DNA from: Macrostomum lignano
Lineage: Eukaryota
Direction of reading: 5' to 3'
NCBI GenBank assembly: GCA_002269645.1
Contig: NIVC01001696.1
Location: forward strand, 62,001-126,000
Length of the DNA: 64,000 nt
Each line of letters opens with the position of its first letter. Position 1 is the stretch's first letter. Both the position numbers and the translations under genes were made by a program. The notes below the pieces were generated by a model. That model saw nothing but the letters and a program-made list of their open reading frames with translations, was not told where the DNA came from and searched no databases. Of the stretch, positions 1-39,815 are shown in pieces.

Positions 1-3000
1 AAGTGTCAGAGAACGTCATGCTGAATCAAGTGTCACAGAACGTCATGCTGAATCAACTGTCACAGAACGTCATGCAGAATCAACTGTCACAGAACGTCAT
101 GCTGAATCAAGTGTCAGGGAACGTCATGCTGAATCAACTGTCAGAGAGCGTCATGCTGAATCAACTGTCAGAGAACGTCATGCTGAATCAACTGTCAGAG
201 AACGTCATGCTGAATCAAGTGTCAGAGAACGTCATGCTGAATCAAGTGTCAGAGAACGTCATGCTGAATCAAGTGTCAGAGAGCGTCATGCTGAATCAAG
301 TGTCACAGAACGTCATGCTGAATCAACTGTCAGAGAACGTCATGCTGAATCAACTGTCAGGGAACGTCATGCTGAATCAAGTGTCAGAGAACGTCATGCT
401 GAATCAAGTGTCACAGAACGTCATGCTGAATCAACTGTCAGGGAACGTCATGCTGAATCAACTGTCAGAGAGCGTCATGCTGAATCAAGTGTCAGAGAGC
501 GTCATGCTGAATCAACTGTCAGGGAACGTCATGCTGAATCAAGTGTCAGAGAACGTCATGCTGAATCAAGTGTCAGAGAACGTCATGCTGAATCAACTGT
601 CACAGAACGTCATGCTGAATCAACTGTCAGGGAACGTCATGCTGAATCAACTGTCACAGAACGTCATGCTGAATCAACTGTCAGAGAACGTCATGCTGAA
701 TCAAGTGTCAGAGAACGTCATGCTGAATCAAGTGTCAGAGAGCGTCATGCTGAATCAACTGTCACAGAACGTCATGCTGAATCAACTGTCAGAGAACGTC
801 ATGCTGAATCAAGTGTCAGGGAACGTCATGCTGAATCAACTGTCAGGGAACGTCATGCTGAATCAAGTGTCAGAGAACGTCATGCTGAATAAAGTGTCAG
901 GGAACGTCATGCTGAATCAAGTGTCAGAGAGCGTCATGCTGAATCAAGTGTCACAGAACGTCATGCTGAATCAACTGTCAGAGAACGTCATGCTGAATCA
1001 AGTGTCAGAGAACGTCATGCTGAATCAAGTGTCAGAGAGCGTCATGCTGAATCAAGTGTCACAGAACGTCATGCTGAATCAAGTGTCAGAGAGCGTCATG
1101 CTGAATCAACTGTCAGAGAGCGTCATGCTGAATCAAGTGTCAGAGAGCGTCATGCTGAATCAAGTGTCACAGAACGTCATGCTGAATCAAGTGTCACAGA
1201 ACGTCATGCTGAATCAACTGTCAGAGAACGTCATGCTGAATCAAGTGTCAGGGAACGTCATGCTGAATCAACTGTCAGAGAACGTCAAGCTGAATCAACT
1301 GTCAGAGAACGTCATGCAGAATCAAGTGTCAGAGAACGTCATGCTGAATCAACTGTCAGGGAACGTCATGCTGAATCAAGTGTCAGAGAACGTCATGCTG
1401 AATCAAGTGTCAGAGAACGTCATGCTGAATCAACTGTCACAGAACGTCATGCTGAATCAACTGTCAGAGAGCGTCATGCTGAATCAAGTGTCAGAGAGCG
1501 TCATGCTGAATCAACTGTCAGGGAACGTCATGCTGAATCAACTGTCACAGAACGTCATGCTGAATCAACTGTCAGAGAACGTCATGCTGAATCAAGTGTC
1601 AGAGAACGTCATGCTGAATCAACTGTCAGGGAACGTCATGCTGAATCAAGTGTCAGAGAACGTCATGCTGAATCAAGTGTCACAGAACGTCATGCTGAAT
1701 CAACTGTCAGGGAACGTCATGCTGAATCAACTGTCAGAGAGCGTCATGCTGAATCAACTGTCAGAGAGCGTCATGCTGAATCAACTGTCAGAGAGCGTCA
1801 TGCTGAATCAACTGTCAGAGAACGTCATGCTGAATCAAGTGTCAGAGAGCGTCATGCTGAATCAAGTGTCACAGAACGTCATGCTGAATCAACTGTCAGA
1901 GAACGTCATGCTGAATCAAGTGTCAGAGAGCGTCATGCTGAATCAAGTGTCAGAGAGCGTCATGCTGAATCAAGTGTCAGAGAGCGTCATGCTGAATCAA
2001 GTGTCAGAGAACGTCATGCTGAATCAACTGTCACAGAACGTCATGCTGAATCAAGTGTCAGGAGCGTCATGCTGAATCAAGTGTCAGAGAGCGTCATGCT
2101 GAATCAACTGTCACAGAACGTCATGCTGAATCAACTGTCACAGAACGTCATGCTGAATCAACTGTCAGAGAGCGTCATGCTGAATCAAGTGTCAGAGAGC
2201 GTCATGCTGAATCAACTGTCAGGGAACGTCATGCTGAATCAACTGTCACAGAACGTCATGCTGAATCAACTGTCAGAGAGCGTCATGCTGAATCAAGTGT
2301 CAGAGAGCGTCATGCTGAATCAAGTGTCAGAGAGCGTCATGCTGAATCAAGTGTCAGAGAGCGTCATGCTGAATCAAGTGTCAGAGAGCGTCATGCTGAA
2401 TCAAGTGTCACAGAACGTCATGCTGAATCAAGTGTCAGAGAACGTCATGCTGAATCAAGTGTCAGAGAACGTCATGCTGAATCAACTGTCACAGAACGTC
2501 ATGCTGAATCAAGTGTCAGGGAACGTCATGCTGAATCAAGTGTCAGGGAACGTCATGCTGAATCAAGTGTCAGAGAGCGTCATGCTGAATCAACTGTCAG
2601 AGAACGTCATGCTGAATCAACTGTCAGGGAACGTCATGCTGAATCAACTGTCAGGGAACGTCATGCTGAATCAAGTGTCAGAGAGCGTCATGCTGAATCA
2701 AGTGTCACAGAACGTCATGCTGAATCAAGTGTCAGAGAACGTCATGCTGAATCAAGTGTCAGAGAGCGTCATGCTGAATCAACTGTCACAGAGCGTCATG
2801 CTGAATCAACTGTCACAGAACGTCATGCTGAATCAACTGTCAGAGAGCGTCATGCTGAATCAAGTGTCAGAGAGCGTCATGCTGAATCAAGTGTCACAGA
2901 ACGTCATGCTGAATCAAGTGTCAGGGAACGTCATGCTGAATCAACTGTCAGAGAGCGTCATGCTGAATCAACTGTCAGAGAGCGTCATGCTGAATCAACT

Positions 3001-4640
3001 GTCAGGGAACGTCATGCTGAATCAACTGTCAGGGAACGTCATGCTGAATCAAGTGTCAGAGAGCGTCATGCTGAATCAAGTGTCAGAGAGCGTCATGCTG
3101 AATCAAGTGTCAGAGAGCGTCATGCTGAATCAAGTGTCAGAGAGCGTCATGCTGAATCAAGTGTCAGAGAGCGTCATGCTGAATCAAGTGTCAGAGAGCG
3201 TCATGCTGAATCAAGTGTCACAGAACGTCATGCTGAATCAAGTGTCACAGAACGTCATGCTGAATCAAGTGTCAGAGAACGTCATGCTGAATCAAGTGTC
3301 AGAGAGCGTCATGCTGAATCAAGTGTCAGGGAACGTCATGCTGAATCAAGTGTCAGAGAGCGTCATGCTGAATCAAGTGTCAGAGAACGTCATGCTGAAT
3401 CAAGTGTCACAGAACGTCATGCTGAATCAACTGTCAGAGAGCGTCATGCTGAATCAAGTGTCAGGGAGCGTCATGCTGAATCAAGTGTCAGAGAACGTCA
3501 TGCTGAATCAACTGTCAGAGAGCGTCATGCTGAATCAAGTGTCAGAGAGCGTCATGCTGAATCAAGTGTCAGAGAGCGTCATGCTGAATCAAGTGTCAGG
3601 GAACGTCATGCTGAATCAAGTGTCAGAGAGCGTCATGCTGAATCAAGTGTCACAGAACGTCATGCTGAATCAAGTGTCAGAGAACGTCATGCTGAATCAA
3701 GTGTCAGAGAGCGTCATGCTGAATCAAGTGTCAGAGAACGTCATGCTGAATCAACTGTCAGAGAGCGTCATGCTGAATCAAGTGTCAGAGAGCGTCATGC
3801 TGAATCAAGTGTCAGAGAGCGTCATGCTGAATCAAGTGTCAGGGAACGTCATGCTGAATCAAGTGTCAGAGAGCGTCATGCTGAATCAAGTGTCACAGAA
3901 CGTCATGCTGAATCAAGTGTCAGAGAACGTCATGCTGAATCAAGTGTCAGAGAGCGTCATGCTGAATCAAGTGTCACAGAACGTCATGCTGAATCAACTG
4001 TCACAGAACGTCATGCTGAATCAAGTGTCACAGAACGTCATGCTGAATCAAGTGTCACAGAACGTCATGCTGAATCAACTGTCAGAGAACGTCATGCTGA
4101 ATCAAGTGTCAGAGAGCGTCATGCTGAATCAAGTGTCAGGGAACGTCATGCTGAATCAAGTGTCAGAGAGCGTCATGCTGAATCAAGTGTCAGAGAACGT
4201 CATGCTGAATCAACTGTCACAGAACGTCATGCTGAATCAACTGTCACAGAACGTCATGCTGAATCAAGTGTCAGAGAGCGTCATGCTGAATCAAGTGTCA
4301 GAGAGCGTCATGCTGAATCAACTGTCAGGGAACGTCATGCTGAATCAACTGTCACAGAACGTCATGCTGAATCAACTGTCAGAGAGCGTCATGCTGAATC
4401 AACTGTCAGAGAACGTCATGCTGAATCAACTGTCAGAGAGCGTCATGCTGAATCAGCTGTCAGAGAACGTCATGCTGAATCAAGTGTCAGTGTCACAGAG
4501 CGTCATGCTGAATCAACTGTCAGAACGTCATGCTGAATCAAGTCAAGAGCGTCATGCTGAATCAAGTGTCAGAGAGCGTCATGCTGAATCAAGTGTCAGA
4601 GACGTCATGCTGAATCAAGTGTCAGAGAACGTCATGCTGA
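1..4640. repeat. 27-bp tandem satellite, left arm (consensus GTCAGAGAACGTCATGCTGAATCAAGT, about 170 units; runs off the window start)
   Basis: Head-to-tail 27-mers with recurrent variants (caaG/Ctg; gag/cag/ggg; aac/agc). Units become deletion-bearing at about 4480-4640, next to the insertion. Confidence 0.98.
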
Positions 4641-5039
4641 TTAAACCCAAAAGACTAACGCAGAGTAAAAGCAAGTGGCACAAAAGACCGGCAGACGCGG
4701 CCCAGAAAGGGAAAACGAACCCGAACACCAACAGAAAGAGGGAGAAGGAGACAAGCGTGTAAAATCAAATCAACGAGCCGCAGAAAAAATTAAACCAAGC
4801 CAAAAAAGCCAGGTCCAAGCAATAGCTCTAAGACTCGTACCTGAGCTCGGGATCTGCTTCAGCCGTCGCAACTCGCTCCGCTCGAGAACTGCGCCAGAGA
4901 CGCGGCTCAGCGCGAGCGACGCCTGCTCAAGCAACCGGCCGCCGTTGACTCATTGAGGCAGGCCCTGCGCAGAATCTTCCGGCTGCGCCTTGGCCCGGCC
5001 GAAGTAGCGCAGCAGAAACAGCAGCATGTGGCGGGGATG

Positions 5040-5554
5040 CGTCAGGCAGCGCGACAGCGGGTCGCTCAGCAGCTGCCAGGACCCCGGCATATGGTGAGCT
5101 CGAAACTGAAAGTCGTGCCTCAGCGCTGCCAGAGTGGCCGTTTGAGCAGGGTCATGACGATCGGGTTGCTGGAGGCACCGCGGTTGATGGTGCCGACCGC
5201 CGCGCTGCTGTCGACGTAGCAGGCCACCTTGCCGCGGCCAGCTGCTCCTGGAACAGAATGATGGCGAGCAGCGGCAGTACCGTCTCCTTGGCGTTGATGT
5301 GCTCGCTCAGGAAGATGCCACCGGCGTCACTGCAGAAGTCGACGAGGCGGAACTCGCGCTGGCCATCAGAGGTGCTCAGGATCATGCCACCGGCACTGAC
5401 GCAGGCGTCCGTCTCGACCGCTGCCAGCACTCGTGCACGCCGCCACAGCTTGTCGGTCGGGAACACTGGGATTGCATGCTGCCAGAACTGCAACTGGGCC
5501 AGTAGCTCGCCGCGCACGGTACTCGATGATGCTGCTCAGGAATAGCGATGGTTA
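5040..5554 (-). pseudogene. RNase H, DIRS-type (frameshifted)
   Basis: VETDACVSAGG, HINAKE, VACYVDSSAAVGTINRG and HHMPGSWQLLSDPLSR match the TDAS / HIN.LE / DN..AV..IN / HIPG..N..AD.LSR series. Confidence 0.8.
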
Positions 5555-5730
5555 NNNNNNNNNNNNNNNNNNNNNNNNNNNNNNNNNNNNNNNNNNNNNN
5601 NNNNNNNNNNNNNNNNNNNNNNNNNNNNNNNNNNNNNNNNNNNNNNNNNNNNNNNNNNNNNNNNNNNNNNNNNNNNNNNNNNNNNNNNNNNNNNNNNNNN
5701 NNNNNNNNNNNNNNNNNNNNNNNNNNNNNN
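5555..5730. other. Assembly gap (176 N)
   Basis: Run of N. Confidence 1.
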
Positions 5731-6400
5731 GTATGCGATGACGACGAATTTGGACAGATGCGAGAATTGCCTGTACATAAAGCGCTTGACAGCTTGCGTT
5801 AGGCGGTGGAAAATGTTGACTGATGCCGCCGACCGAATGGGAGTCGCGTGTCAACCAGATAAGTGGGCTGACCGTCCAGCTCGAACGTCCACCGGAGCCC
5901 CGTCGCCTTATAGCAGTCTGGGTGCACCTGAACACTTCGGTAGGCGTGGCGTAGGATGAACCAGCTTGGTGCCAGCTGCCTGGTGAGATCCTCGACATTG
6001 GCAAACTTCATCTTCTGGCGGGGCTTGTACAGATCGTTGAGGCTGTTGCCCTGTGGCGCGGACGCGTCGTGAATCAGGCGGATGGCGCCGTCTGCCTTCG
6101 GGACGGCGCCCAGTGGGCTGATGATGGTCGGCCTGGCGATGCCCAAGTCAGTTGCGCTGATGTACCGGCCAGCCACGACCTCCTCTCTGATCTGCAGCTC
6201 AACGGCATTCCGATTTGCCTCGCAGCGGGCGGATGCATGATTTTCGAGCTGGGATTCGCTGGTCGGAGCCGCGTCGGTGATGCGAAAGCCATCGCGAATT
6301 CCCGCGATCAGAAACTCCGCGTCCGAGTCTCCGAGCAGGACTGGTGTCCAAGCAGCAGTTAACAGCGGCCAACGTTTTCGGAGTGCAGCCACCGGCCGGC
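5731..6400 (-). pseudogene. Reverse transcriptase, DIRS-type, N-terminal two thirds (frameshifted, truncated by the gap)
   Basis: [15 protein letters not shown] ... [20 protein letters not shown] ... LRHAYRSV ... RLPFG, then after a 1-nt shift [19 protein letters not shown]...VVIAY. The expected LDD falls exactly at the start of the N gap. Confidence 0.85.
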
Positions 6401-6404
6401 AACA

Positions 6405-7065
6405 GGGCCGGCAGCAGCGCCGGCAGCAGGACCGGCAGCAGGGCCGGCAGCGGGGCCGGCGGCAGGGCCGGCGGCAGGGCCAGCGGCTGGGCCGGCAGCA
6501 GGACCGGCGGCAGGGCCGGCGGCTGGGCCGGCAGCAGGACCGGCGGCAGGGCCGGCGGCTGGGCCGGCAGCAGGGCCGGCAGCAGGACCGGCAGCAGGGC
6601 CGGCAGCAGGACCGGCAGCAGGGCCGGCAGCAGGGCCGGCAGCAGGGCCGGCAGCAGGGCCGGCAGCAGGACCGGCAGCAGGGCCGGCAGCAGGACCGGC
6701 GGCAGGGCCGGCAGCAGGGCCGGCAGCAGGACGGCAGCAGGAACGGCAGCAGGACAGGCGGCAGGGCCGGCAGCAGGACCGGCAGCAGGGCCGGCAGCAG
6801 GACCGGCGGCAGGGCCGGCAGCAGGGCCGGCAGCAGGACCGGCAGCAGGAACGGCAGCAGGGCCGGCAGCAGGGCCGGCAGCAGGAACGGCAGCAGGGCC
6901 GGCAGTAGGGCCGGCAGCAGGGCCGGCGGCAGGGCCGGCGGCAGGGCGAGTGGCAGGGCGAGTGGCATGGCGAGCGGCAGGGCGAGCGGCAGGGCGAGCG
7001 GCAGGGCGAGTGGCAGGTCGAGCGGCAAGGCGAGTGGCAGGGCGAGCGGCAGGGCCAGTGGCAGT
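6405..7065. repeat. GC-rich 12-bp tandem repeats (GGCAGCAGGGCC / GGCAGCAGGACC, then GGCAGGGCGAGY) at the gag-RT junction
   Basis: Seen directly. It generates several low-complexity ORFs on both strands. Confidence 0.95.
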
Positions 7066-7163
7066 GCGAGCAGCTGTCTCGCATGGAATTAAAATTTTGG
7101 ACTGTCTATCAGACGCCGTCCGCTTAGGGCTAAAACTGGTGCCGCCGCGACCCGCCTCTTTGC

Positions 7164-7775
7164 TCAGTTTTTTGATTCGGCAGCCACCGAGCTGTGTTGC
7201 AGCTTTGAGTGGCTCCCTTCGCAGATGCGGCAGATGTGGGCGAAATTGCAGGTGTGTCTGTGACAGCCTTTGTTGCTATTGAACAAGCCGCAGATGACCT
7301 GTCCAGCGGATGACAGCTGGCCCCTGCTACGGTGACCCTGGACTCCTTGACCGACCGCGACTGGGCCAGCAGCTCGCAGGTTTTTGGGCGCCGTCATATG
7401 CTTGATGATGAGGTTCAGATCGGGGCTGTCCCAGTCGCGCTGTCGCGAGTGCTGCTGCAGCCTCATGTCCTGGTCGTACTGGAGCACCACCTTCCAGTCG
7501 TAGCCAGCGTCGAGCAGCTCGCCGATGTGGATGTTAAAGTTGAGGTAGGCGTTCAGACTCTTGCAGTCGGGCTGTCCATCCGTACGGGCGCCACCAGCTG
7601 GCCGGTCTCCAGCAGTCGCTGCATGATCGCGCGCGTTGGCAGCCACCCACTGGCCGAAGTTGACTCCGGACAGGCTCGGCGTTGCGCCTTTCAGAGTCAG
7701 GCGACCACGTTCCTGTGTCAGCCATCCTCCCGACTGCTGCCTCTCGTCCAGAAATTCCGGGATGAGCAGCGCTGA
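7164..7775 (-). pseudogene. gag core and CCCH zinc finger (frameshifted)
   Basis: LLIPEFL...SLSGVNFGQWVAANAR..., YLNFNIHIGELLDAGYDWKVVLQYDQDMRLQQ, then CGLFNSNKGCHRHTCNFAH (C-x8-C-x4-C-x3-H) followed by CRIC. This is typical of DIRS/Ngaro gag proteins. Confidence 0.7.
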
Positions 7776-8209
7776 TGGGGCCGCTGGGCTCCGGCCGAAT
7801 CAAACCTCGGTTGTCGGCTCTGGTCCCCGAACAGGCTGGCGTAGATGTCCGGCCCTCCTCTGGCCAGCGGGGGCGATGCGGCGCCACTGCGGATCGACTG
7901 CACTTCATCCCGCAACTGGGCCTCAGCCTTCTGCAGTTTAAGCAGCTCGATCCTCTTCTGAGTCTGCCGAATCTGCGCTTCTGTGGCCTCCTCCGCTGGC
8001 GCAGCCCGGCGCACGTCATCCTCGTCCTGGTCGTCGTCACCGTCGTCATCGCTGGGAGCTCGTTCGGCCTGGCTTGCAGCGAGCAGGCGGCCTATCAGCT
8101 CTTCTTTATTGCCACTTGTAGGTAAGGCCTTCTCGCGTAAGACATCTTTGAGGGCCTGCACGGTCATGCTGCCCAACGTAGAGTCCATTGTGAGTGCAGT
8201 GCTTGGCAA
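7718..8209 (-). pseudogene. gag-like ORF, N-terminal part with SAP domain
   Basis: MTVQALKDVLREKALPTSGNKEELIGRLL fits the SAP helix-loop-helix pattern. An acidic patch and a coiled coil follow. It continues by frameshift into the gag core. Confidence 0.7.
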
Positions 8210-8418
8210 ATCAGGCAGGCTAAAAATATTTTGCCAAAATTACGCCGACTCAGCGGCCGCGACGCGTGACTAAATAACACAGAGCGGGGGGAGGCTGCCC
8301 TAAGCCCTGCACGCACGCAGAGCACCAGCACCCCACCAACCCACCAAAGCGAGGCCGGGCCGGCGCGGGGGGGGGTTTAAAACCAGTTAGAGTCAGATAC
8401 CTGCCTCAAACTGACGTA

Positions 8419-11400
8419 ATCAACTGTCAGAGAACGTCATGCTGAATCAAGTGTCAGAGAACGTCATGCTGAATCAAGTGTCAGAGAGCGTCATGCTGAA
8501 TCAACTGTCAGAGAACGTCATGCTGAATCAACTGTCAGAGAGCGTCATGCTGAATCAACTGTCAGGGAACGTCATGCTGAATCAAGTGTCAGAGAACGTC
8601 ATGCTGAATCAAGTGTCACAGAACGTCATGCTGAATCAAGTGTCAGAGAACGTCATGCTGAATCAAGTGTCAGAGAGCGTCATGCTGAATCAACTGTCAC
8701 AGAGCGTCATGCTGAATCAACTGTCACAGAACGTCATGCTGAATCAAGTGTCAGGGAACGTCATGCTGAATCAACTGTCAGAGAGCGTCATGCTGAATCA
8801 ACTGTCAGAGAGCGTCATGCTGAATCAACTGTCAGGGAACGTCATGCTGAATCAACTGTCAGGGAACGTCATGCTGAATCAAGAGTCAGAGAGCGTCATG
8901 CTGAATCAAGTGTCAGAGAGCGTCATGCTGAATCAAGTGTCAGAGAGCGTCATGCTGAATCAAGTGTCAGAGAGCGTCATGCTGAATCAAGTGTCAGAGA
9001 GCGTCATGCTGAATCAAGTGTCAGAGAGCGTCATGCTGAATCAAGTGTCACAGAACGTCATGCTGAATCAAGTGTCAGGGAACGTCATGCTGAATCAAGT
9101 GTCAGAGAGCGTCATGCTGAATCAAGTGTCAGGGAACGTCATGCTGAATCAAGTGTCAGAGAGCGTCATGCTGAATCAAGTGTCAGAGAGCGTCATGCTG
9201 AATCAAGTGTCACAGAACGTCATGCTGAATCAAGTGTCAGGGAACGTCATGCTGAATCAAGTGTCAGAGAGCGTCATGCTGAATCAAGTGTCAGGGAACG
9301 TCATGCTGAATCAAGTGTCAGAGAGCGTCATGCTGAATCAACTGTCAGAGAACGTCATGCTGAATCAACTGTCACAGAACGTCATGCTGAATCAAGTGTC
9401 AGAGAACGTCATGCTGAATCAACTGTCAGGGAACGTCATGCTGAATCAAGTGTCAGAGAACGTCATGCTGAATCAAGTGTCAGAGAACGTCATGCTGAAT
9501 CAACTGTCACAGAACGTCATGCTGAATCAACTGTCAGAGAACGTCATGCTGAATTAAGTGTCAGAGAACGTCATGCTGAATCAACTGTCAGGGAACGTCA
9601 TGCTGAATCAAGTGTCAGAGAACGTCATGCTGAATCAAGTGTCACAGAACGTCATGCTGAATCAACTGTCACAGAACGTCATGCTGAATCAACTGTCAGA
9701 GAGCGTCATGCTGAATCAAGTGTCAGAGAGCGTCATGCTGAATCAACTGTCAGGGAACGTCATGCTGAATCAACTGTCACAGAACGTCATGCTGAATCAA
9801 CTGTCAGAGAACGTCATGCTGAATCAAGTGTCAGAGAACGTCATGCTGAATCAACTGTCAGGGAACGTCATGCTGAATCAAGTGTCAGAGAACGTCATGC
9901 TGAATCAAGTGTCACAGAACGTCATGCTGAATCAACTGTCAGGGAACGTCATGCTGAATCAACTGTCAGAGAGCGTCATGCTGAATCAACTGTCAGAGAA
10001 CGTCATGCTGAATCAACTGTCAGAGAGCGTCATGCTGAATCAACTGTCAGAGAACGTCATGCTGAATCAAGTGTCAGAGAGCGTCATGCTGAATCAACTG
10101 TCACAGAACGTCATGCTGAATCAACTGTCAGAGAACGTCATGCTGAATCAAGTGTCAGAGAGCGTCATGCTGAATCAAGTGTCAGAGAGCGTCATGCTGA
10201 ATCAAGTGTCAGAGAGCGTCATGCTGAATCAAGTGTCAGAGAACGTCATGCTGAATCAACTGTCACAGAACGTCATGCTGAATCAAGTGTCAGGGAGCGT
10301 CATGCTGAATCAAGTGTCAGAGAACGTCATGCTGAATCAACTGTCACAGAACGTCATGCTGAATCAACTGTCACAGAACGTCATGCTGAATCAAGTGTCA
10401 GAGAGCGTCATGCTGAATCAAGTGTCAGAGAACGTCATGCTGAATCAACTGTCACAGAACGTCATGCTGAATCAACTGTCAGAGAACGTCATGCTGAATC
10501 AACTGTCAGAGAACGTCATGCTGAATCAAGTGTCAGAGAACGTCATGCTGAATCAAGTGTCAGAGAGCGTCATGCTGAATCAACTGTCAGAGAACGTCAT
10601 GCTGAATCAAGTGTCAGAGAACGTCATGCTGAATCAACTGTCAGGGAACGTCATGCTGAATCAAGTGTCAGAGAACGTCATGCTGAATCAAGTGTCAGGG
10701 AACGTCATGCTGAATCAAGTGTCAGAGAGCGTCATGCTGAATCAAGTGTCACAGAACGTCATGCTGAATCAACTGTCAGAGAACGTCATGCTGAATCAAG
10801 TGTCAGAGAACGTCATGCTGAATCAAGTGTCAGAGAGCGTCATGCTGAATCAAGTGTCACAGAACGTCATGCTGAATCAAGTGTCAGAGAGCGTCATGCT
10901 GAATCAACTGTCAGAGAGCGTCATGCTGAATCAACTGTCAGAGAGCGTCATGCTGAATCAAGTGTCACAGAACGTCATGCTGAATCAAGTGTCACAGAAC
11001 GTCATGCTGAATCAACTGTCAGAGAACGTCATGCTGAATCAAGTGTCAGGGAACGTCATGCTGAATCAACTGTCAGAGAACGTCATGCTGAATCAAGTGT
11101 CAGAGAACGTCATGCTGAATCAAGTGTCAGAGAGCGTCATGCTGAATCAAGTGTCAGAGAGCGTCATGCTGAATCAAGTGTAAGAGAGCGTCATGCTGAA
11201 TCAAGTGTCAGAGAACGTCATGCTGAATCAACTGTCACAGAACGTCATGCTGAATCAAGTGTCAGGGAGCGTCATGCTGAATCAAGTGTCACAGAACGTC
11301 ATGCTGAATCAACTGTCACAGAACGTCATGCTGAATCAAGTGTCAGAGAGCGTCATGCTGAATCAAGTGTCAGGGAGCGTCATGCTGAATCAAGTGTCAG

Positions 11401-14400
11401 AGAGCGTCATGCTGAATCAACTGTCAGAGAGCGTCATGCTGAATCAAGTGTCAGAGAGCGTCATGCTGAATCAAGTGTCAGAGAGCGTCATGCTGAATCA
11501 AGTGTCAGGGAACGTCATGCTGAATCAAGTGTCAGAGAGCGTCATGCTGAATCAAGTGTCACAGAACGTCATGCTGAATCAAGTGTCAGAGAACGTCATG
11601 CTGAATCAAGTGTCAGAGAACGTCATGCTGAATCAACTGTCACAGAACGTCATGCTGAATCAACTGTCACAGAACGTCATGCTGAATCAAGTGTCAGAGA
11701 GCGTCATGCTGAATCAAGTGTCAGAGAACGTCATGCTGAATCAACTGTCACAGAACGTCATGCTGAATCAACTGTCACAGAACGTCATGCTGAATCAACT
11801 GTCAGAGAACGTCATGCTGAATCAAGTGTCAGGGAACGTCATGCTGAATCAAGTGTCAGAGAGCGTCATGCTGAATCAACTGTCAGAGAACGTCATGCTG
11901 AATCAACTGTCAGAGAGCGTCATGCTGAATCAACTGTCAGGGAACGTCATGCTGAATCAAGTGTCAGAGAACGTCATGCTGAATCAAGTGTCACAGAACG
12001 TCATGCTGAATCAAGTGTCAGAGAACTCATGCTGAATCAAGTGTCAGAGAGCGTCATGCTGAATCAACTGTCAGAGCGTCATGCTGAATCAACTGTCACA
12101 GAACGTCATGCTGAATCAACTGTCAGAGAGCGTCATGCTGAATCAAGTGTCAGAGAGCGTCATGCTGAATCAAGTGTCACAGAACGTCATGCTGAATCAA
12201 GTGTCAGGGAACGTCATGCTGAATCAACTGTCAGAGAGCGTCATGCTGAATCAACTGTCAGAGAGCGTCATGCTGAATCAACTGTCAGGAACGTCATGCT
12301 GAATCAACTGTCAGGGAACGTCATGCTGAATCAAGTGTCAGAGAGCGTCATGCTGAATCAAGTGTCAGAGAGCGTCATGCTGAATCAAGTGTCAGAGAGC
12401 GTCATGCTGAATCAAGTGTCAGAGAGCGTCATGCTGAATCAAGTGTCAGAGAGCGTCATGCTGAATCAAGTGTCAGAGAGCGTCATGCTGAATCAAGTGT
12501 CACAGAACGTCATGCTGAATCAAGTGTCAGGGAACGTCATGCTGAATCAAGTGTCAGAGAGCGTCATGCTGAATCAAGTGTCAGGGAACGTCATGCTGAA
12601 TCAAGTGTCAGAGAGCGTCATGCTGAATCAAGTGTCAGAGAGCGTCATGCTGAATCAAGTGTCACAGAACGTCATGCTGAATCAAGTGTCAGGGAACGTC
12701 ATGCTGAATCAAGTGTCAGAGAGCGTCATGCTGAATCAAGTGTCAGGGAACGTCATGCTGAATCAAGTGTCAGAGAGCGTCATGCTGAATCAACTGTCAG
12801 AGAACGTCATGCTGAATCAACTGTCACAGAACGTCATGCTGAATCAAGTGTCAGAGAACGTCATGCTGAATCAACTGTCAGGGAACGTCATGCTGAATCA
12901 AGTGTCAGAGAACGTCATGCTGAATCAAGTGTCAGAGAACGTCATGCTGAATCAACTGTCACAGAACGTCATGCTGAATCAACTGTCAGAGAACGTCATG
13001 CTGAATCAAGTGTCAGAGAACGTCATGCTGAATCAACTGTCAGGGAACGTCATGCTGAATCAAGTGTCAGAGAACGTCATGCTGAATCAAGTGTCACAGA
13101 ACGTCATGCTGAATCAACTGTCACAGAACGTCATGCTGAATCAACTGTCAGAGAGCGTCATGCTGAATCAAGTGTCAGAGAGCGTCATGCTGAATCAACT
13201 GTCAGGAACGTCATGCTGAATCAACTGTCACAGAACGTCATGCTGAATCAAGTGTCAGAGAACGTCATGCTGAATCAAGTGTCAGAGAACGTCATGCTGA
13301 ATCAACTGTCAGGGAACGTCATGCTGAATCAAGTGTCAGAGAACGTCATGCTGAATCAAGTGTCACAGAACGTCATGCTGAATCAACTGTCAGGGAACGT
13401 CATGCTGAATCAACTGTCAGAGAGCGTCATGCTGAATCAACTGTCAGAGAACGTCATGCTGAATCAACTGTCAGAGAGCGTCATGCTGAATCAACTGTCA
13501 GAGAACGTCATGCTGAATCAAGTGTCAGAGAGCGTCATGCTGAATCAACTGTCACAGAACGTCATGCTGAATCAACTGTCAGAGAACGTCATGCTGAATC
13601 AAGTGTCAGAGAGCGTCATGCTGAATCAAGTGTCAGAGAGCGTCATGCTGAATCAAGTGTCAGAGAGCGTCATGCTGAATCAAGTGTCAGAGAACGTCAT
13701 GCTGAATCAACTGTCACAGAACGTCATGCTGAATCAAGTGTCAGGAGCGTCATGCTGAATCAAGTGTCAGAGAACGTCATGCTGAATCAACTGTCACAGA
13801 ACGTCATGCTGAATCAAGTGTCAGGGAGCGTCATGCTGAATCAAGTGTCAGAGAGCGTCATGCTGAATCAACTGTCACAGAACGTCATGCTGAATCAAGT
13901 GTCAGAGAACGTCATGCTGAATCAACTGTCAGGGAACGTCATGCTGAATCAAGTGTCAGAGAACGTCATGCTGAATCAAGTGTCAGAGAACGTCATGCTG
14001 AATCAACTGTCACAGAACGTCATGCTGAATCAACTGTCAGAGAACGTCATGCTGAATCAAGTGTCAGAGAACGTCATGCTGAATCAACTGTCAGGGAACG
14101 TCATGCTGAATCAAGTGTCAGAGAACGTCATGCTGAATCAAGTGTCAGAGAACGTCATGCTGAATCAACTGTCACAGAACGTCATGCTGAATCAACTGTC
14201 AGAGAGCGTCATGCTGAATCAAGTGTCAGAGAGCGTCATGCTGAATCAACTGTCAGGGAACGTCATGCTGAATCAACTGTCACAGAACGTCATGCTGAAT
14301 CAACTGTCAGAGAACGTCATGCTGAATCAAGTGTCAGAGAACGTCATGCTGAATCAACTGTCAGGGAACGTCATGCTGAATCAAGTGTCAGAGAACGTCA

Positions 14401-16712
14401 TGCTGAATCAACTGTCACAGAACGTCATGCTGAATCAACTGTCAGGGAACGTCATGCTGAATCAACTGTCAGAGAGCGTCATGCTGAATCAACTGTCAGA
14501 GAACGTCATGCTGAATCAACTGTCAGAGAGCGTCATGCTGAATCAACTGTCAGAGAACGTCATGCTGAATCAACTGTCAGAGAGCGTCATGCTGAATCAA
14601 CTGTCACAGAACGTCATGCTGAATCAACTGTCAGAGAACGTCATGCTGAATCAAGTGTCAGAGAGCGTCATGCTGAATCAAGTGTCAGAGAGCGTCATGC
14701 TGAATCAAGTGTCAGAGAGCGTCATGCTGAATCAAGTGTCAGAGAACGTCATGCTGAATCAAGTGTCACAGAACGTCATGCTGAATCAAGTGTCAGGGAG
14801 CGTCATGCTGAATCAAGTGTCAGAGAACGTCATGCTGAATCAACTGTCACAGAACGTCATGCTGAATCAAGTGTCAGGGAGCGTCATGCTGAATCAAGTG
14901 TCAGAGAGCGTCATGCTGAATCAACTGTCACAGAACGTCATGCTGAATCAAGTGTCAGAGAGCGTCATGCTGAATCAAGTGTCAGGGAGCGTCATGCTGA
15001 ATCAAGTGTCAGAGAACGTCATGCTGAATCAACTGTCAGAGAGCGTCATGCTGAATCAAGTGTCAGAGAGCGTCATGCTGAATCAAGTGTCAGAGAGCGT
15101 CATGCTGAATCAAGTGTCAGGGAACGTCATGCTGAATCAAGTGTCAGAGAACGTCATGCTGAATCAAGTGTCACAGAACGTCATGCTGAATCAACTGTCA
15201 GGGAACGTCATGCTGAATCAAGTGTCAGAGAGCGTCATGCTGAATCAACTGTTAGAGAACGTCATGCTGAATCAAGTGTCAGAGAGCGTCATGCTGAATC
15301 AACTGTCACAGAACGTCATGCTGAATCAACTGTCAGAGAACGTCATGCTGAATCAAGTGTCAGAGAGCGTCATGCTGAATCAAGTGTCAGAGAACGTCAT
15401 GCTGAATCAAGTGTCAGAGAGCGTCATGCTGAATCAAGTGTCAGGAGCGTCATGCTGAATCAAGTGTCAGAGAACGTCATGCTGAATCAACTGTCAGAGA
15501 GCGTCATGCTGAATCAAGTGTCAGAGAGCGTCATGCTGAATCAAGTGTCAGAGAGCGTCATGCTGAATCAACTGTCACAGAACGTCATGCTGAATCAAGT
15601 GTCAGAGAACGTCATGCTGAATCAAGTGTCACAGAACGTCATGCTGAATCAACTGTCACAGAACGTCATGCTGAATCAACTGTCACAGAACGTCATGCTG
15701 AATCAACTGTCAGAGAACGTCATGCTGAATCAAGTGTCAGGGAACGTCATGCTGAATCAAGTGTCAGAGAGCGTCATGCTGAATCAACTGTCAGAGAACG
15801 TCATGCTGAATCAAGTGTCAGGGAACGTCATGCTGAATCAACTGTCAGGGAACGTCATGCTGAATCAAGTGTCAGAGAGCGTCATGCTGAATCAAGTGTC
15901 ACAGAACGTCATGCTGAATCAAGTGTCAGAGAACGTCATGCTGAATCAAGTGTCAGAGAGCGTCATGCTGAATCAACTGTCACAGAGCGTCATGCTGAAT
16001 CAACTGTCACAGAACGTCATGCTGAATCAAGTGTCAGAGAGCGTCATGCTGAATCAAGTGTCAGAGAGCGTCATGCTGAATCAAGTGTCACAGAACGTCA
16101 TGCTGAATCAAGTGTCAGGGAACGTCATGCTGAATCAACTGTCAGAGAGCGTCATGCTGAATCAACTGTCAGAGAGCGTCATGCTGAATCAACTGTCAGG
16201 GAACGTCATGCTGAATCAACTGTCAGGGAACGTCATGCTGAATCAAGTGTCAGAGAGCGTCATGCTGAATCAAGTGTCAGAGAGCGTCATGCTGAATCAA
16301 GTGTCAGAGAGCGTCATGCTGAATCAAGTGTCAGAGAGCGTCATGCTGAATCAAGTGTCAGAGAGCGTCATGCTGAATCAAGTGTCAGAGAGCGTCATGC
16401 TGAATCAAGTGTCAGAGAGCGTCATGCTGAATCAAGTGTCAGGGAACGTCATGCCGAATCAAGTGTCAGAGAGCGTCATGCTGAATCAAGTGTCAGGGAA
16501 CGTCATGCTGAATCAAGTGTCAGAGAGCGTCATGCTGAATCAAGTGTCAGAGAGCGTCATGCTGAATCAAGTGTCACAGAACGTCATGCTGAATCAAGTG
16601 TCAGAGAACGTCATGCTGAATCAAGTGTCAGAGAACGTCATGCTGAATCAAGTGTCACAGAACGTCATGCTGAATCAACTGTCAGGGAACGTCATGCTGA
16701 ATCAACTGTCAG
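8419..16712. repeat. 27-bp tandem satellite, right arm (about 305 units)
   Basis: Same unit and variants as the left arm. Occasional 26-bp units and rare point variants (for example TAA-creating changes near 9555 and 11181). Confidence 0.98.
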
Positions 16713-16749
16713 CTGATGACAGAATAAAATCGGTAATCTCCTGACTCAC

Positions 16750-17143
16750 CGTTCTCTCCGCACCAGTCCACCTGGGCTCCGCTATTGATGAGCATCTCAC
16801 AGGACTCGGCCTTGCCAGCGAGAGCCGCCTGCATCAGGGGGCTGAAGCCTTTGTCATCTGGCGCGTTGGGATTGGCCTCGCCTGTGTCTAACACGCGCTG
16901 AAGCTCCTGCAGTTTCTCCAGTCGAACCAGACGATGCAGATCCTCGCCGGTGTACAGTCTGCGAGCGGTTTTGACCGACTGCGGGTTGGAGAACTCGCCC
17001 CAGCCGGGGTCGACGCCGAAACGGAAGCGCAGGCTGTAGGACTGGCTGTCTGACAGGCCAGTCACTGTGCACTTCGTGTCGTAGCCTTTGTAGGCCACGT
17101 CCCAGCTGTCTGGCTGCGCCTGGTCGGAGCGCTGCACCTGCAC
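16750..17143 (-). CDS. FANK1: FANK1-like exon 2 (end of FN3 domain plus first ankyrin repeats)
   Basis: YKGYDTKCTVTGLSDSQSYSLRFR...SVKTARRLYTGEDLHRLV...GFSPLMQAALAG...LINSGAQVD resembles FANK1 from memory. Acceptor cccag|GTG at 17144 and donor G|GTGAGT at 16749 (phase 1). Confidence 0.88.
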
Positions 17144-17174
17144 CTGGGATCGAGTGTGTGGGTAGGGTAATGCA

Positions 17175-17945
17175 GGTCTCCTCTCCCTTCATCTCCTCTC
17201 TCCCTTCATCTCCTCTCTCCCTTCATCTCCTCTCTCCCTTCCTCTCCTCTCTCCCTTCATCTCCTCTCTCCCTTCCTCTCCTCTCTCCCTTCATCTCCTC
17301 TCTCCCCTCCTCTCCTCTCTCCCTTCCCTATCCCTACATCTCCTCTTTCCCTATCCCTACATCTCCTCTTTCACTATCCCTACATCTCCTCTTTCCCTAT
17401 CCCTATATCTCCTCTTTCAATATGCCTACATCTCCTCTTTTCCTATCCCTGTATCTCCTCTTTCACTATCATTATATCTCCTATTTTCCTATCCCTACAT
17501 CTCCTCTCCCTACATCTCCTCTCCCTACATCTCCTCTCCCTACATCTCCTTTCACCCATCATCTCCTCTCTCCCTTCATCTCCTCTCTCCCTTCATCTCC
17601 TCTCTCCCTTCATCTCATCTCCTCATCATTTTTCCTAGATCTACTTTCTCTACATCTCTTCCTAAATTTCTCCCCTTACATTTACTCTCTCTCCCTACAT
17701 TTCCTCTTTCCCTATCCCTACATCACCTCTCCTGACATCTTCTCTAGGCCTACATCTCCTTTCTCCTTACCTCTCTTCTCTCTAAATCTCATCTATTCCT
17801 ACATCTCCTCTCCCTACTCTCATTTATGCCTACATCTCTCTCTACATTTTTATCGCTACACCTCCTCTCGTCCTAAATCTCTTCTCTTCTTACATCTACT
17901 TTCTCTCATCTCACCCTGCATCTCTGTCTGTAAATCTCATCTCTC
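17175..17945. repeat. CT-rich low-complexity repeat filling FANK1 intron 1
   Basis: Degenerate CATCTCCTCTCTCCCTT / CCTACATCTCCTCT units. Confidence 0.9.
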
Positions 17946-17962
17946 AACTCTATAAAACAGAC

Positions 17963-18097
17963 CTCAGACTTGAGCTTGCCATCCTGTGCGCTGAGGACTC
18001 CAGTCAGCTTCGCGTGCAGCGACTCCCAGCTGAGCTCCAGAGACTGATGAGTCACTGCCGTGATCTTGAGAGCTGGCGGCTTCGGTGGAATTGGCAT
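17963..18097 (-). CDS. FANK1: FANK1-like exon 1 (FN3 N-terminus, 45 codons)
   Basis: MPIPPKPPALKITAVTHQSLELSW resembles the FANK1 start ([22 protein letters not shown], from memory). Donor GAG|GT at 17962 is phase 0 and in frame with exon 2. Confidence 0.85.
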
Positions 18098-18551: not shown

Positions 18552-19527
<976 letters not shown>

Positions 19528-20204
19528 GTGAGTCATTATCCACTATTTCGCCACAGTGCATTTAACCCAGCGCAGCTCAGTTAGAATTCTTAATAATGGC
19601 TGAAATCAGCTTATCGACGTATCCTCTCTCCTTGTTGGTAGTGCAGAATCAAATAGGAAAATTTCAACTGACAAGTCCTGTACGCGCAAATGCAAAAATG
19701 AATGCAATGCTCTCTTCCGGGTAAAAGCAGCCTGAGCTCCCCTTTGAAGTTCAGTGCTCTGAGCACAAATTCTCATCTGGCCCCAGCTGCTCAGGGACAC
19801 ACGGCATAGCGCAGGTTTTAACTGAAGAACCGGGGGGCAAACTTCCTGAACAATCTTTTGAAGGAAGTTTGTGGTGGGCTGCGCCGTGCTCTGCATTCAA
19901 GCATGGGGTGGATGCTGGGAGTGCGACACAATGATGAAGGTTTGGATTGGGGTTCTTCTCAGGTTGCACCTAGCTAATGCATTTCCTAAGCCTCAGGTAT
20001 GCGATTGCATTGTCCGGGATCAACTTTTTTAGAATCCTTGGATTCAACTTTGAGGGAGAGCCTTCATCCACTCTGTGTTTTTTTTACTCACGTGGCCTCA
20101 TCAAATTCTGCGATTTGCTATACTCACCATCTGTGCCTCTCCGCCTTCTTCTATAGCTGTCTCCATCTCATGTGTTCTTCCCAATTCGATGCTCTCTCAC
20201 CTTG

Positions 20205-20595
20205 TCGATATCCCTCCTCTCTCTCTCTCTCTGCCTCCCTCTCCATCTCCCCCTCACCCCTCCCTCTCCATCTGCCTCTCCTCTTTCCACTTCTCCATCT
20301 ACCCCTCCTTTCTCACTCTCTCCCTCTCCTCCTCTCTCCTTTTTCCTCTCCTCCCTCTCCCTCTTCCTCTCTCCCTCTCCATCTACCCCCTCTCCCTCTC
20401 CCTCTCCCCCTCTCTCTCCCTCTCCTCTTCCTCTCTCCCCCTTCCTCTCTCCCTCTCCATTTACATCATCTTCCTCTCCATCTCCCTCTCCCTCTTCCTC
20501 TCTCCCTCTCCATCTACCCCCTCTCCCTCTCAGTCTCCTCCTTCTCCCACTCTCACCCTCCCTATCCCTCTCTGTCCCCATCTCCCTCCCCCTCT
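20205..20595. repeat. CT-rich simple repeat (CTCTCC / CATCTCC)
   Basis: Seen directly. Confidence 0.92.
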
Positions 20596-20812
20596 GTATT
20601 ACAACTAGGTATAAAAACCAGCACATTAACATTTAGATTAGGTAAAACCCTGTTAGAAATCTCTAATTGTTGCCCGAGTTAATACTGTCGTCTCGACCAG
20701 TTTGCCTATTGTAAAGATCTAAAATTTTCTTTATATTGAATGGCATCGGTAGAAGCGGTAGAATTAAAGTCGCAACGCAACTGCAGCTCATCCTATTGAA
20801 TTGTGATTCTTT

Positions 20813-20826
20813 GTCACCATGGAAAC
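20813..20826. promoter_or_regulatory. Candidate RFX X-box GTCACCATGGAAAC
   Basis: Exact fit to the GTHNYYATRRNAAC consensus. Lies 2.7 kb upstream of the FANK1 ATG in a unique island between CT arrays. Confidence 0.4.
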
Positions 20827-21294
20827 CGCGAGGCAGCACAACAGTAACTAGCATAGCGGATGAAATATTTTCTATAGAAAAGCGCCGAGAAGCGTACAGC
20901 TTTATTGCTATTGAAAGCTGAGCTCTGCAGACTGAAGAAGATGATAGAAGATGAGAATCTGCAGTCACAGCACAGCCATTGATCATTGATAATGAATTTG
21001 AGCTTAAAATCATCCCGCAGTTCCATTGTGTCAGAATTTCTATTTAAAATTAAGTAAACGATAATATACGCTTAATTTCCATGCATATGCGCTTAACAGC
21101 CTACTGGAATCCACGCTTTCAGTAGAGTAGTTTGCAAATAACCGTCGTTATATTTAATAGCCTTTCACATCCTAAAAAGTTTTATATTGACCTTGCTATA
21201 ACGATACTCATAAAAAGAAATGAGATGGCATGTGTACGCGAAGCCCTTTCTGCTTGTAAACGCTTAGAAATTGTTTAAACTTGTCCTTGGACAT

Positions 21295-23250
21295 TACCTC
21301 TATCTACCTCTCCATCTCCCTCTCCATCTTCCTCTCCCTCTCCCTCTCCCTCTCCCTCTCCCTCTTCATCTCCCTCTCCCTCTTCCTCTCCATCTCCCTC
21401 TCCCTCTTCCTCTCCCTCTCCATCTCCCTCTCCATCTCCCTCTCCATCTCTCTCTCCATCTCCCTCTCCATCTCCATCTCCCTCTCCTCTCTTCCTCTCC
21501 CTCTCCATCTCCCTCTCCATCTCCCTCTCCCTCTTCCTCTCCCTCCCCATCTCCCTCTCCATCTCCTCTCCCTCTTCCTCTCCCTCTCCATCTCCCTCTC
21601 CCTCTTCCTCTCCTCTCCATCTCCCTCTCCCTCTTCCTCTCCCTCTCCATCTCCCTCTCCATCTCCCTCTCCATCTCCATCTCCCTCTCCCTCTTCCTCT
21701 CCCTCTCCCTCTCCATCTCCATCTCCCTCTCCATCTCCCTCTCCCTCTTCCTCTCCTCTCCATCTCCCTCTCCATCTCCCTCTCCCTCTTCCTCTCCCTC
21801 TCCCTCTTCCTCTTCGTCTCTCTCTCTATCTCCCTTTCCCGCTCTGTCTCCATCTCCCTCTCCATCTCCCTCTCCATCTCCCTCTCCATCTCCCTCTCCA
21901 TCTCCATCTCCCTCTCCATCTCCCTCTCCCTCTTCCTCTCCCTCTCCATCTCCCTCTCCATCTCCCTCTCCCTCTTCCTCTCCCTCCCCATCTCCCTCTC
22001 CATCTCCCTCTCCCTCTTCCTCTCCCTCTCCATCTCCCTCTCCCTCTTCCTCTCCCTCTCCATCTCCCTCTCCCTCTTCCTCTCCCTCTCCATCTCCCTC
22101 TCCATCTCCCTCTCCATCTCCATCTCCCTCTCCCTCTTCCTCTCCCTCTCCCTCTCCATCTCCATCTCCCTCTCCATCTCCCTCTCCCTCTTCCTCTCCC
22201 TCTCCATCTCCCTCTCCATCTCCCTCTCCCTCTTCCTCTCCCTCTCCCTCTTCCTCTTCGTCTCTCTCTCTATCTCCCTTTCCCGCTCTGTCTCCATCTC
22301 CCTCTCCATCTCCCTCTCCATCTCCCTCTCCATCTCCCTCTCCATCTCCATCTCCCTCTCCCTCCCCATCTCCCTCCCCATCTCCCTCTCCATCTCCCTC
22401 TCCCTCTTCCTCTCCCTCCCCATCTCCCTCTCCATTTCCCTCTCTATCTCCCTCTCCCTCTTCCTCTCCCTCTCCATCTCCCTCTCCCTCTTCTCTCCCT
22501 CTCCATCTCCCTCTCCATCTCCCTCTCCCTCTTCCTCTCCCTCTCCCTCTCCCTCTTCGTCTCTCTCTCCATCTCCCTCTCCTCTCCATCTCCCTCTCCC
22601 TCTTCCTCTCCCTCTCCATCTCCCTCTCCATCTCCCTCTCCATCTCCCTCTCCCTCTTCCTCTCCCTCTCCATCTCCCTCTCCCTCTTCCTCTCCCTCTC
22701 CCTCTTCCTCTTCGTCTCTCTCTCCATCTCCCTCTCCATCTCCCTCTTCCTCTCCCTCTCCATCTCTCTCTCCATCTCCCTCTCCATCTCCCTCTCCCTC
22801 TTCCTCTCCTCTCCCTCTTCCTCTTCGTCTCTCTCTCTATCTCCCTTTCCCTCTCTGTCTCCTTCTCCCTCTCCATCTCCCTCTCCCTCTTCATCTCCTT
22901 CTCCCTCTTCCTCTCCCTCTCCCTCTTCCTCTCCTCTCCCTCTTCCTCTCCCTCTCCATCTCCATCTTCCTCTCCCTCTTCCTCTCCTCTCCCTCTTCCT
23001 CTCCCTCTCCATCTCCCTCTCCATCTCCCTCTCCCTCTCCATCTCCCTCTCCATCTCCCTCCCCCTCTCCATCTCCCTCTCCCTCTTCCTCTCCCTCTCC
23101 CTCTTCCTCTTCGTCTCTCTCTCCCTCTTCCTCTTCGTCTCTCTCTCTATCTCCCTTTCCCTCTCTGTCTCCTTCTCCCTCTCCCTCTTCATTTCTTCAT
23201 TTCTTCTACATCCCGCTCTCCCACCCTTTTTCTTTCCTTTCTCTTTATCT
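21295..23250. repeat. About 2-kb CT-rich minisatellite (CTCTCCATCTCC / CTCTTCCTCTCC) with internal higher-order copies
   Basis: Seen directly. The spacer CTTCGTCTCTCTCTATCTCCCTTTCC recurs several times. Confidence 0.96.
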
Positions 23251-27014: not shown

Positions 27015-27246
27015 ACCCATAACTAACCTTAACCCTAAGGCACCATGTACCCTAGCCTAACCCTGAACCATAACCCTAAGGCACTAACCTTAACCCCAAC
27101 CCTAACCTAACCCTAAACCCTAACTTAAAGGCACAAGTTCTAACTCCGACCCTAACCTAACCCTAACCCTAAGGCACAAGTTCTAACTCCAACCCTAAAC
27201 TTAACCCTAAACCCTAACTTTAAGGCACAAGCTCTAACCCTAACCC
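27015..27246 (+). repeat. Degenerate telomere-like (TAACCC)n patch interspersed with AAGGCACAAG motifs
   Basis: cctaaccctaacctaaccctaaaccctaac and similar. Confidence 0.8.
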
Positions 27247-27247
27247 T

Positions 27248-27494
27248 ATTCGAGCTTGTGATGGTGGTTGCTAAACTTTTCGACGATATGATTTTTCGAG
27301 CTTATGACTTTTCGAGCTTGTGATGGTGGTTGTTAAATCAGTTTTCGACGATGTGATTTTTCGAGCTTATGACTTTTCGAGCTTGTGATGGTGGTTGCTA
27401 AATTTTTCGACGATATGATTTTTCGAGCTTATGATATTTCGAGCTTGTGATGGTGGATGCTTTTCGACGATGTGATTTTTCGAGCTTGTGATGG
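27248..27494 (+). repeat. About 62-bp tandem repeat, 4 copies (TTCGAGCTTGTGATGGTGGTTG...TTCGACGAT...TTCGAGCTTATGA)
   Basis: Seen directly; abuts the telomere-like patch. Confidence 0.88.
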
Positions 27495-39292: not shown

Positions 39293-39815
39293 CAGAATCT
39301 CACCCTGGAGAATCTCACCATGGAGAATCTTACCTTGGAGAATCTTACCCTGGAAAATCTCACCTTGGAGAATATCACCCCTTAGGATTACACACTGGAG
39401 AATATCACCCTATAGAATCTCACCTTGGAGAATCTCCCCATCGAGAATCTCACCCAGAAGAATCTCATACTGGAGAATCTCACCTTGGAGAATCTCACCT
39501 TGGAGAATCTCACCTTGGAGAATCTCACCTTGGAGAATCTCACCTTGGAGAATCTCACCTCGGAGAATCTCCCCATGGAGAATCTTACCCTGGATATTCT
39601 CATCTTGGAGAATATCACCTAGGAGAATCACACACTGGAGAATCCCACCTAAGAGAATCTCACCTTGGAGAGTCTCACCTTGGAGAATCTCACTCCGGAG
39701 AATGTCACCTAGGAGAATTTTACCCTGAAAAATCTTAACTTGTAAAATCTCATCCTAGAGAATCTCACCCAGGAGAATCTCACCCTTGAGAATCTCACCC
39801 TTGAGAAACTCAACC
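39293..39815 (+). repeat. 15-bp minisatellite (GGAGAATCTCACCYT)n, array A
   Basis: Seen directly. Confidence 0.95.

Follow-up and report, generated by a model that had tools for sequence, protein, structure and literature searches.

A FANK1-family gene of Macrostomum lignano with a 27-bp satellite in its putative last intron

FANK1 (fibronectin type III and ankyrin repeat domains 1) has an FN3 domain followed by about six ankyrin repeats and is near 345 amino acids (aa) in total length. The FANK1 family is tied to testis, motile cilia and multiciliated cells (PMC5936064). The described systems closest to the locus analyzed here are the gigantic introns of the Drosophila Y type, which range from hundreds of kb to Mb and exceed the typical intron size >1000-fold (PMC11207136), and the variable number tandem repeats (VNTRs) of introns. 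Here a 64,000-nt stretch of the flatworm Macrostomum lignano, NIVC01001696.1:62001-126000 of assembly Mlig_3_7 (referred to below as the window), was analyzed, the minus strand of which carries two coding exons of a FANK1-like gene followed, 37 nt beyond a canonical splice donor, by a 27-bp satellite that runs off the window with a single retroelement inserted in it.

As in Drosophila kl-2, kl-3 and kl-5, the Y-linked axonemal dynein genes with Y-loops, the satellite lies in the apparent intron of a gene from a family associated with cilia or sperm, and in both systems a transposable element is embedded in the array. In contrast to the 0.1–5 Mb of the fly, the stretch in the window is at least 16.7 kb; it is called an intron only because of its donor, the acceptor exon lying outside the window. 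Unlike the fly, M. lignano is hermaphroditic and lacks a Y chromosome, and the neighborhood of the gene is ordinary gene-bearing sequence with a kinase, a G-protein-coupled receptor (GPCR)-like gene, an M13 peptidase-like gene and an amiloride-sensitive sodium channel (ASC).

The reading preferred here, which we judge to have about an even chance of being correct, is that an ordinary inherited intron has been inflated >16-fold by the satellite and a dead retroelement, with exon 3 lying further left on the scaffold. The window region would thereby represent the 5' half of a M. lignano FANK1-family paralogue whose last coding intron was inherited, is ~1 kb in the sister paralogue and was inflated in the window gene by the 27-bp array, which would have grown by unequal exchange of multi-monomer blocks before a reverse transcriptase (RT) element inserted into it and then decayed. 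The gene would still be whole, with one ~520-nt exon 3 starting GC-AAR-ACN (G-K-T..) further along the minus strand. This exon is predicted in the part of NIVC01001696.1 to the left of the window, which is 62 kb long, and we infer that the pre-mRNA would be transcribed across the repeat of at least 16.7 kb and spliced in the ordinary way.

FANK1-like exons and the donor shared with an intact paralogue

The coding features of the gene, in its reading direction, are as follows.

17963..18097, minus strand: coding exon 1; ATG at 18097; 45 codons (MPIPPKPP...GKLKSE) ending ..KSE|gt at a phase-0 donor, GAG|GTCTGT
17144..17962, minus strand: intron 1; 819 nt, GT..AG, with GA-rich 17-23-bp tandem repeats on the sense strand
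16750..17143, minus strand: coding exon 2; VQVQRSDQ...DWCGEN plus 1 nt, encoding the remainder of the FN3 domain, ankyrin repeat 1 and half of repeat 2
16713..16749, minus strand: phase-1 donor and unique intron sequence; GAG AAC G|GTGAGT with GT at 16749-16748; 37 nt

The Met of exon 1 aligned with the N-terminal Met of homologues, with tblastn matches over 18097-17948, and exons 1 and 2 joined into a 176-aa product comprising an FN3 domain and 1.5 ankyrin repeats. Pfam matches above the cut-offs were obtained for fn3 at residues 6-101 (25.9 bits against a cut-off of 25) and for Ank/Ank_4 at residues 114-171 (Ank_4 at 114-164, Ank at 144-171). In an exhaustive HMMER search of a library of 1.84-billion representative proteins, the only end-to-end matches of the product were FN3+ANK proteins of 345-368 aa, specifically P0004 (348 aa), P0014 (353 aa), P0023 (368 aa), P0032 (345 aa), P0047 (347 aa) and P0114 (360 aa). 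The best PDB match of the FN3 part was 1wfu (E 3.2e-5), which is mouse Fank1, a point on which the name of the PDB entry is silent. Like the family, the window gene has an N-terminal FN3 domain followed by ankyrin repeats, of which residues 1-176 of ~348 lie within the window; in the family alignment the protein covers the N-terminal half and breaks off midway through ankyrin repeat 2 (column 192 of 402). On this architecture, and on the FANK1-like length of the relatives, assignment of the gene to the FANK1 family is sound. A preliminary description of the window had proposed the FANK1 identity, the end of exon 2 within the ankyrin domain at a phase-1 G|GTGAGT donor (16749), a 37-nt unique spacer before the satellite (array end at 16712) and a repeat-filled intron 1, all of which were confirmed.

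Exons 1 and 2 contain no stop and no frameshift and retain 14 of the 14 columns that are invariant in the family (nine members). Their identity to outgroup homologues is 30-40%, against 32-45% for the intact paralogue described below; they have diverged no faster than that paralogue and show no sign of decay. The exon 2 donor is a perfect GTGAGT, and the 16.7 kb contain no other GTRAGT on their sense strand. Read-through of this donor adds 13 codons before a stop (..GESGDYRFYSVIS*).

The intact M. lignano paralogue, overlooked in the preliminary description, is Mlig016313g1/g2 (PAA93512.1, PAA78949.1), a protein of 348 aa sharing 49% aa identity with the window gene over 171 aligned residues. 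Its gene (locus L001) has three coding exons, with the first intron after residue 80 and a last intron of 1,018 nt that is in phase 1 and splits the Gly codon of ..W-S-G-D-N-G|K-T.., the single exon downstream of it encoding residues 176-348 (GKTCLMLVAYKG...). The donor codon and phase are identical in the two genes (..CGEN G|gtgagt in the window, ..SGDN G|gtgcgt in the paralogue), so that the donor at the end of exon 2 is an inherited splice site and one ~520-nt terminal coding exon would be expected by descent. An intron at this position was not found in the monogenean homologue (Cichlidogyrus); because its introns sit elsewhere, conservation of the donor position does not extend beyond the two Macrostomum paralogues. 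This common intron measures at least 16.7 kb in the window gene, as opposed to 1.0 kb in the paralogue, and the first introns also differ, being placed after residue 45 in the window gene and after residue 80 in the paralogue.

The site of intron 1 has no counterpart in either the paralogue or the monogenean homologue; the protein alignment is seamless across it, and the residue-80 intron of the paralogue is absent from the window gene. Rows reported by Tandem Repeats Finder (TRF) at 17181-17897 cover ~88% of intron 1, which is CT-rich on the plus strand. A repeat could have mediated the gain of this intron or have filled it.

The 27-bp satellite and the size of the putative intron

The satellite is present in two blocks, given here without strand.

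8421..16712: right block; 8,292 bp, ~307 monomers, no N, with non-satellite sequence at both ends
1..4640: left block; 4,640 bp, ~172 monomers, continuing past base 1 of the window

TRF reported the 27-bp unit over 1 to 16712 with a score of 14631, far beyond chance. The window holds ~480 monomers, the far end of the array not being reached. A 14-nt core, GTCATGCTGAATCA, occurs in 471 exact copies, all in a single orientation, with a spacing of exactly 27 in 453 of 470 cases. Variation between monomers (counted where a position varies in more than two of 453 monomers) is confined to four positions (16 G/C, 22 G/C, 23 A/G and 26 A/G), giving eight common variants. Identical strings of 23 and 17 monomer variants recur 3.45 kb apart in the right block, and the left and right blocks share their orientation, the same 8 main monomer variants and strings of 12-13 monomers. 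These patterns describe a homogeneous array that owes its shape to the duplication of blocks and combines the features of satellite DNA, namely a long head-to-tail array, a single orientation, homogeneity and higher-order structure. Intronic VNTRs offer a second likeness, with a 27-bp head-to-tail unit in one orientation, few polymorphic positions arranged in higher-order blocks and an intron that is short in the paralogue, although the array in the window is larger than most of them.

On the sense strand of the gene, the acceptor-like TTGATTCAG| occurs in nearly every monomer (473 copies) and the branch-like CTGAC in most (381 copies). Splicing from the phase-1 donor into such an acceptor would yield G|CA TGA, i.e. 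Ala and then a stop. Neither AATAAA nor ATTAAA was found on the sense strand of the satellite, which speaks for a gene that is still alive. The possibility that the satellite is coding was considered and rejected, the two open frames on the plus strand being a mechanical result of a 27-nt unit that is stop-free in those frames and the sense strand of the gene having TGA in all three frames. The plus-strand open reading frames (ORFs) of 897 aa and 372 aa (VMLNQVSES repeats), at 2069-4762 and 8439-9557, could nevertheless be mistaken for proteins by a gene caller.

The putative intron has a lower bound of 16,749 nt and a maximum of ~79 kb on the scaffold (16.7 kb plus 62 kb). The mean intron of M. 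lignano is 1.1-1.4 kb and tandem and simple repeats make up 15% of the genome (PMC5730564), so that repeat-laden introns are to be expected and the lower bound corresponds to ~12-15 times the species mean. The two satellite blocks amount to 12.9 kb (4640 + 8292), or 77% of the 16.7 kb, and the remainder is one retroelement; the intron body is therefore mostly simple satellite. The earlier account of at least 16.7 kb filled by satellite holds for the ~13 kb of satellite itself, whereas 4641-8420 is a retroelement that had been overlooked and that contains an assembly gap. The term ‘giant’ in the Drosophila Y sense was an overstatement, as the hundreds of kb and >1000-fold excess of the Y-loop type are not reached in the window.

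True gigantism of that type, i.e. a satellite intron that measures tens to hundreds of kb and whose transcription in testis or ciliated cells depends on a dedicated programme, is very unlikely in our estimate. The association of the family with testis and motile cilia (PMC5936064) agrees with it, as do a satellite that begins 37 nt past a good donor and runs off the window and the room for up to ~62 kb more on the scaffold. The size, however, is 16.7 kb and ~12-16 times normal rather than >1000 times as in Drosophila (PMC11207136); a genome with so high a content of tandem and simple repeats needs no special explanation for a repeat-laden intron; a search of the 460 bp preceding the ATG for an RFX X-box, with up to 2 mismatches allowed, gave no match; and the sequence has no bearing on transcription or on special factors. 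It is likewise improbable, if a little less so, that the array reaches an intact exon 3 after tens of kb and that, in testis or ciliated epidermis, all of the satellite enters the pre-mRNA and is removed by splicing. In that case the gene would provide an autosomal counterpart, from a hermaphroditic flatworm, to the satellite-driven expansion of an intron in a cilia/sperm gene, and the spliceosome would have to ignore ~470 in-register decoy acceptors.

The retroelement insert, the scaffold gap and the predicted C-terminal exon

The two satellite blocks are separated by an element with the following parts.

4641..8420, minus strand (sense to the gene): degenerate retroelement; GC-rich, 3.78 kb including a 176-N gap, inserted in the array
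about 8188-7718, minus strand: gag with a SAP domain (Pfam SAP, E 1.5e-9)
within 7646-7164, minus strand: CCCH-type zinc finger, recognised by eye in an ORF
6394-7071, minus strand: 12-bp tandem repeat, ~50 copies of GGCCGGCAGCAG, between the zinc-finger gag and the RT
about 6400-5731, minus strand: RT with a frameshift near 5800; 48 homologues, most with PF00078 (RVT_1)
5555..5730, no strand: assembly gap of 176 N inside the RT, between the Y of YxDD and the segment preceding RNase H
5517 to about 5030, minus strand: RNase H, frameshifted

At both junctions a satellite monomer is cut cleanly (..GTCATGCTGA|TTAAACC.. and ..CTGACGT|AATCAACTG..), which indicates insertion into a pre-existing array. 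The LPFG motif of the RT aligns with homologues, and the RNase H gave a weak Pfam match (E 0.063) with ETDAC and HMPGSWQLLSDPLSR motifs present. The RT resembles the DIRS/Ngaro group of tyrosine-recombinase retroelements, a likeness that we draw from its motifs (RLIHDAS, LPFG, YxDD) and not from a named database match. As in DIRS/Ngaro-like elements, the order is gag, RT and RNase H, the last ending in an HxPGxxNxxAD-like motif followed by LSR (HMPGSWQLLSDPLSR). In contrast to them, the window copy is frameshifted and interrupted by the gap, and neither a recombinase nor the characteristic repeats were found in it. Specifically, no integrase or tyrosine recombinase was detected in the element, the ~390 nt after RNase H fitting no such ORF, and no terminal direct or inverted repeats were found. 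The 12-bp repeat GGCCGGCAGCAG is open in several frames, which are either Pro/Ala/Leu-rich or Cys/Arg/Pro-rich.

Before the gap, the frameshift-corrected RT ends ..KFVVIAY, the aligned Y of homologues continuing with LDD (..IVVYLDD, the YLDD motif); after it, the sense strand resumes with ..ELLAQLQFWQHAI..VETDAC (..LQFWQHAI..VETDAC), the start of RNase H. The two flanks of the gap thus derive from one element, with matching orientation and the expected order of parts, in support of the scaffold join. Neither flank is FANK1 coding sequence, and the FANK1 reading frame is unaffected by the gap. In homologues, at least 115 residues follow YLDD without overlapping the post-gap piece; because these are unaccounted for, the real gap is probably longer than the stated 176, at ~350 nt or more, unless this copy carries a deletion. 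The gap was sized from the protein homologues, a relative of the element at locus L003 itself being broken or of another genetic code.

An assembly artefact, in which the length or continuity of the array is wrong through a chimeric contig join within a multi-locus satellite family or an erroneous scaffold join across the 176 N, would allow a short true intron with exon 3 on another contig. Besides the gap itself (5555-5730) and its stated length, too short for the missing RT segment, this explanation can draw on a genome that is highly repetitive and partly duplicated and an assembly that its authors called difficult (PMC5730564). We consider it unlikely, as the gap is flanked by one retroelement in correct order and orientation with no further copy in the window or in locus L001, the satellite blocks agree in orientation and in long variant strings, and the sequence free of N left of exon 2, which comprises 37 nt, a satellite block of 8,292 bp and 2.7 kb of the element, runs without exon 3.

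Several results weigh against an inflated intron in a gene that is still whole. A tblastn search with eight full-length FN3+ANK proteins matched only residues 1 to ~177, at 18097-16739; the C-terminal half (residues ~178-348) gave nothing on either strand of the 64 kb, in agreement with the earlier finding of no further exon down to base 1. The earlier designation of the stretch as a FANK1 intron is supported by a donor at the codon and phase of the 1,018-nt Mlig016313 intron and lacks an exon 3 within the window. No full-length protein of this gene was found in the 1.84-billion-representative library, where no public model joins both halves; the sole near-identical model, P0001 (UniRef A0A1I8J7C0, M. 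lignano), is a second copy that is 98% identical and likewise open, with 175 aa ending at the same exon, and no contig encoding it is on record. A protein with exons 1 and 2 is apparently also absent from the GenBank annotation of NIVC01001696.1, which is a weak point. The intact Mlig016313 makes the window copy dispensable in principle, splicing into any one of the several hundred acceptor-like decoys on the sense strand of the satellite would lead at once to a stop, and a retroelement in sense orientation with an AATAAA (at 8110) is the arrangement in which transcripts are most likely to end early.

The weight of the missing models is limited. Transcripts that overlapped annotated repeats were left out of the GenBank annotation of this assembly (PMC5730564), which makes the lack of a full-length model weak evidence. 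A word-indexed protein search with the C-terminal half of the paralogue, aimed at an orphan M. lignano model for exon 3, gave generic ankyrin proteins only, again a weak negative; this search returned no match longer than ~1.75 times the query, missing even P0004, which contains the query exactly, so that its negatives on full-length models carry little weight. Neither the supplementary material of the genome paper (for FANK1, Mlig016313 or scaf1696) nor the literature (for FANK1 together with Macrostomum) yielded anything.

The same results would fit a truncated gene or recent pseudogene, in which satellite expansion, the retroelement or a rearrangement split exons 1 and 2 from the rest. The locus would then make nothing, or a short-lived transcript for a stub of 177-190 aa (FN3 and 1.5 ankyrin repeats) through read-through or splicing into the satellite. 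The lack of a C-terminal exon in 16.7 kb, a sole public model that stops at this exon, the decoy acceptors with their immediate stop, the AATAAA of the element and a function that Mlig016313 could cover all speak for such a split. Set against these are exons without stop, frameshift or loss of an invariant residue that diverged no faster than the intact paralogue, the perfect GTGAGT donor and a scaffold that goes on for 62 kb past base 1 of the window in the reading direction of the gene. Truncation is rated as rather unlikely, though the most serious of the rival explanations, and an inherited, repeat-inflated intron remains the preferred reading. The preliminary interpretation is in this sense borne out in part, for the gene, the exons, the donor and the satellite and not for gigantism.

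M. lignano is transgenic and amenable to RNA interference. If exon 3 were found and spliced to exon 2, the locus would provide a tractable gene that tolerates a >16-fold satellite expansion of one intron, suited to testing transcription and splice-site choice amid hundreds of identical decoys, with the short-intron paralogue as a control in the same genome. If exon 3 were missing, the locus would simply be one where repeats have severed a gene copy, within a genome that is partly duplicated. In both cases attention is drawn to a gene that is represented in current annotations by no more than a 175-aa fragment.

Surroundings of the gene in the window

To the right of the FANK1-like gene, the window contains the following genes and gene-like sequences.

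28807-30210: single-exon protein kinase, 467 aa; GenBank annotation with exactly that product
40046-40843 and 47137-48009: rhodopsin-type GPCR-like ORF (weak 7tm_1) and a look-alike second ORF, recognised by eye only and without a Pfam match
54354-56455: weak M13-peptidase-like gene
59600-61045: ASC, E 9e-19

These neighbors are ordinary genes, which places the satellite in gene-bearing sequence and not in a heterochromatic block. The kinase annotation is on NIVC01001696.1 (assembly GCA_002269645.1), a scaffold of 248,894 bp, and the kinase locus L002 matches 18807-40210 of the window in every base, which fixes the window at 62001-126000 of that scaffold. No Rfam family was detected in the window.

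Other tandem repeats were observed in the same region. The 5 kb upstream of the gene (18552-23188) contain 1 kb of (TAGA)n and TCCCTC/TCTCCC arrays of 0.4 kb (20211-20595) and 1.9 kb (21303-23188), and the plus strand is strongly CT-biased at 20-23 kb, as in intron 1. A 62-bp tandem repeat (27249-27491) is preceded directly by interstitial telomere-like sequence, a degenerate array of CCCTAA variants (27049-27248), the two together spanning 27049-27491. Further minisatellites include a 15-bp unit at two sites 4 kb apart (39294-39816 and 43483-44034), a 30-bp unit with 95% identity at 49860-50402 and a 20/147-bp unit at 51162-51841, and an (ATCT)n array at 62331-64000 continues past the right end of the window.

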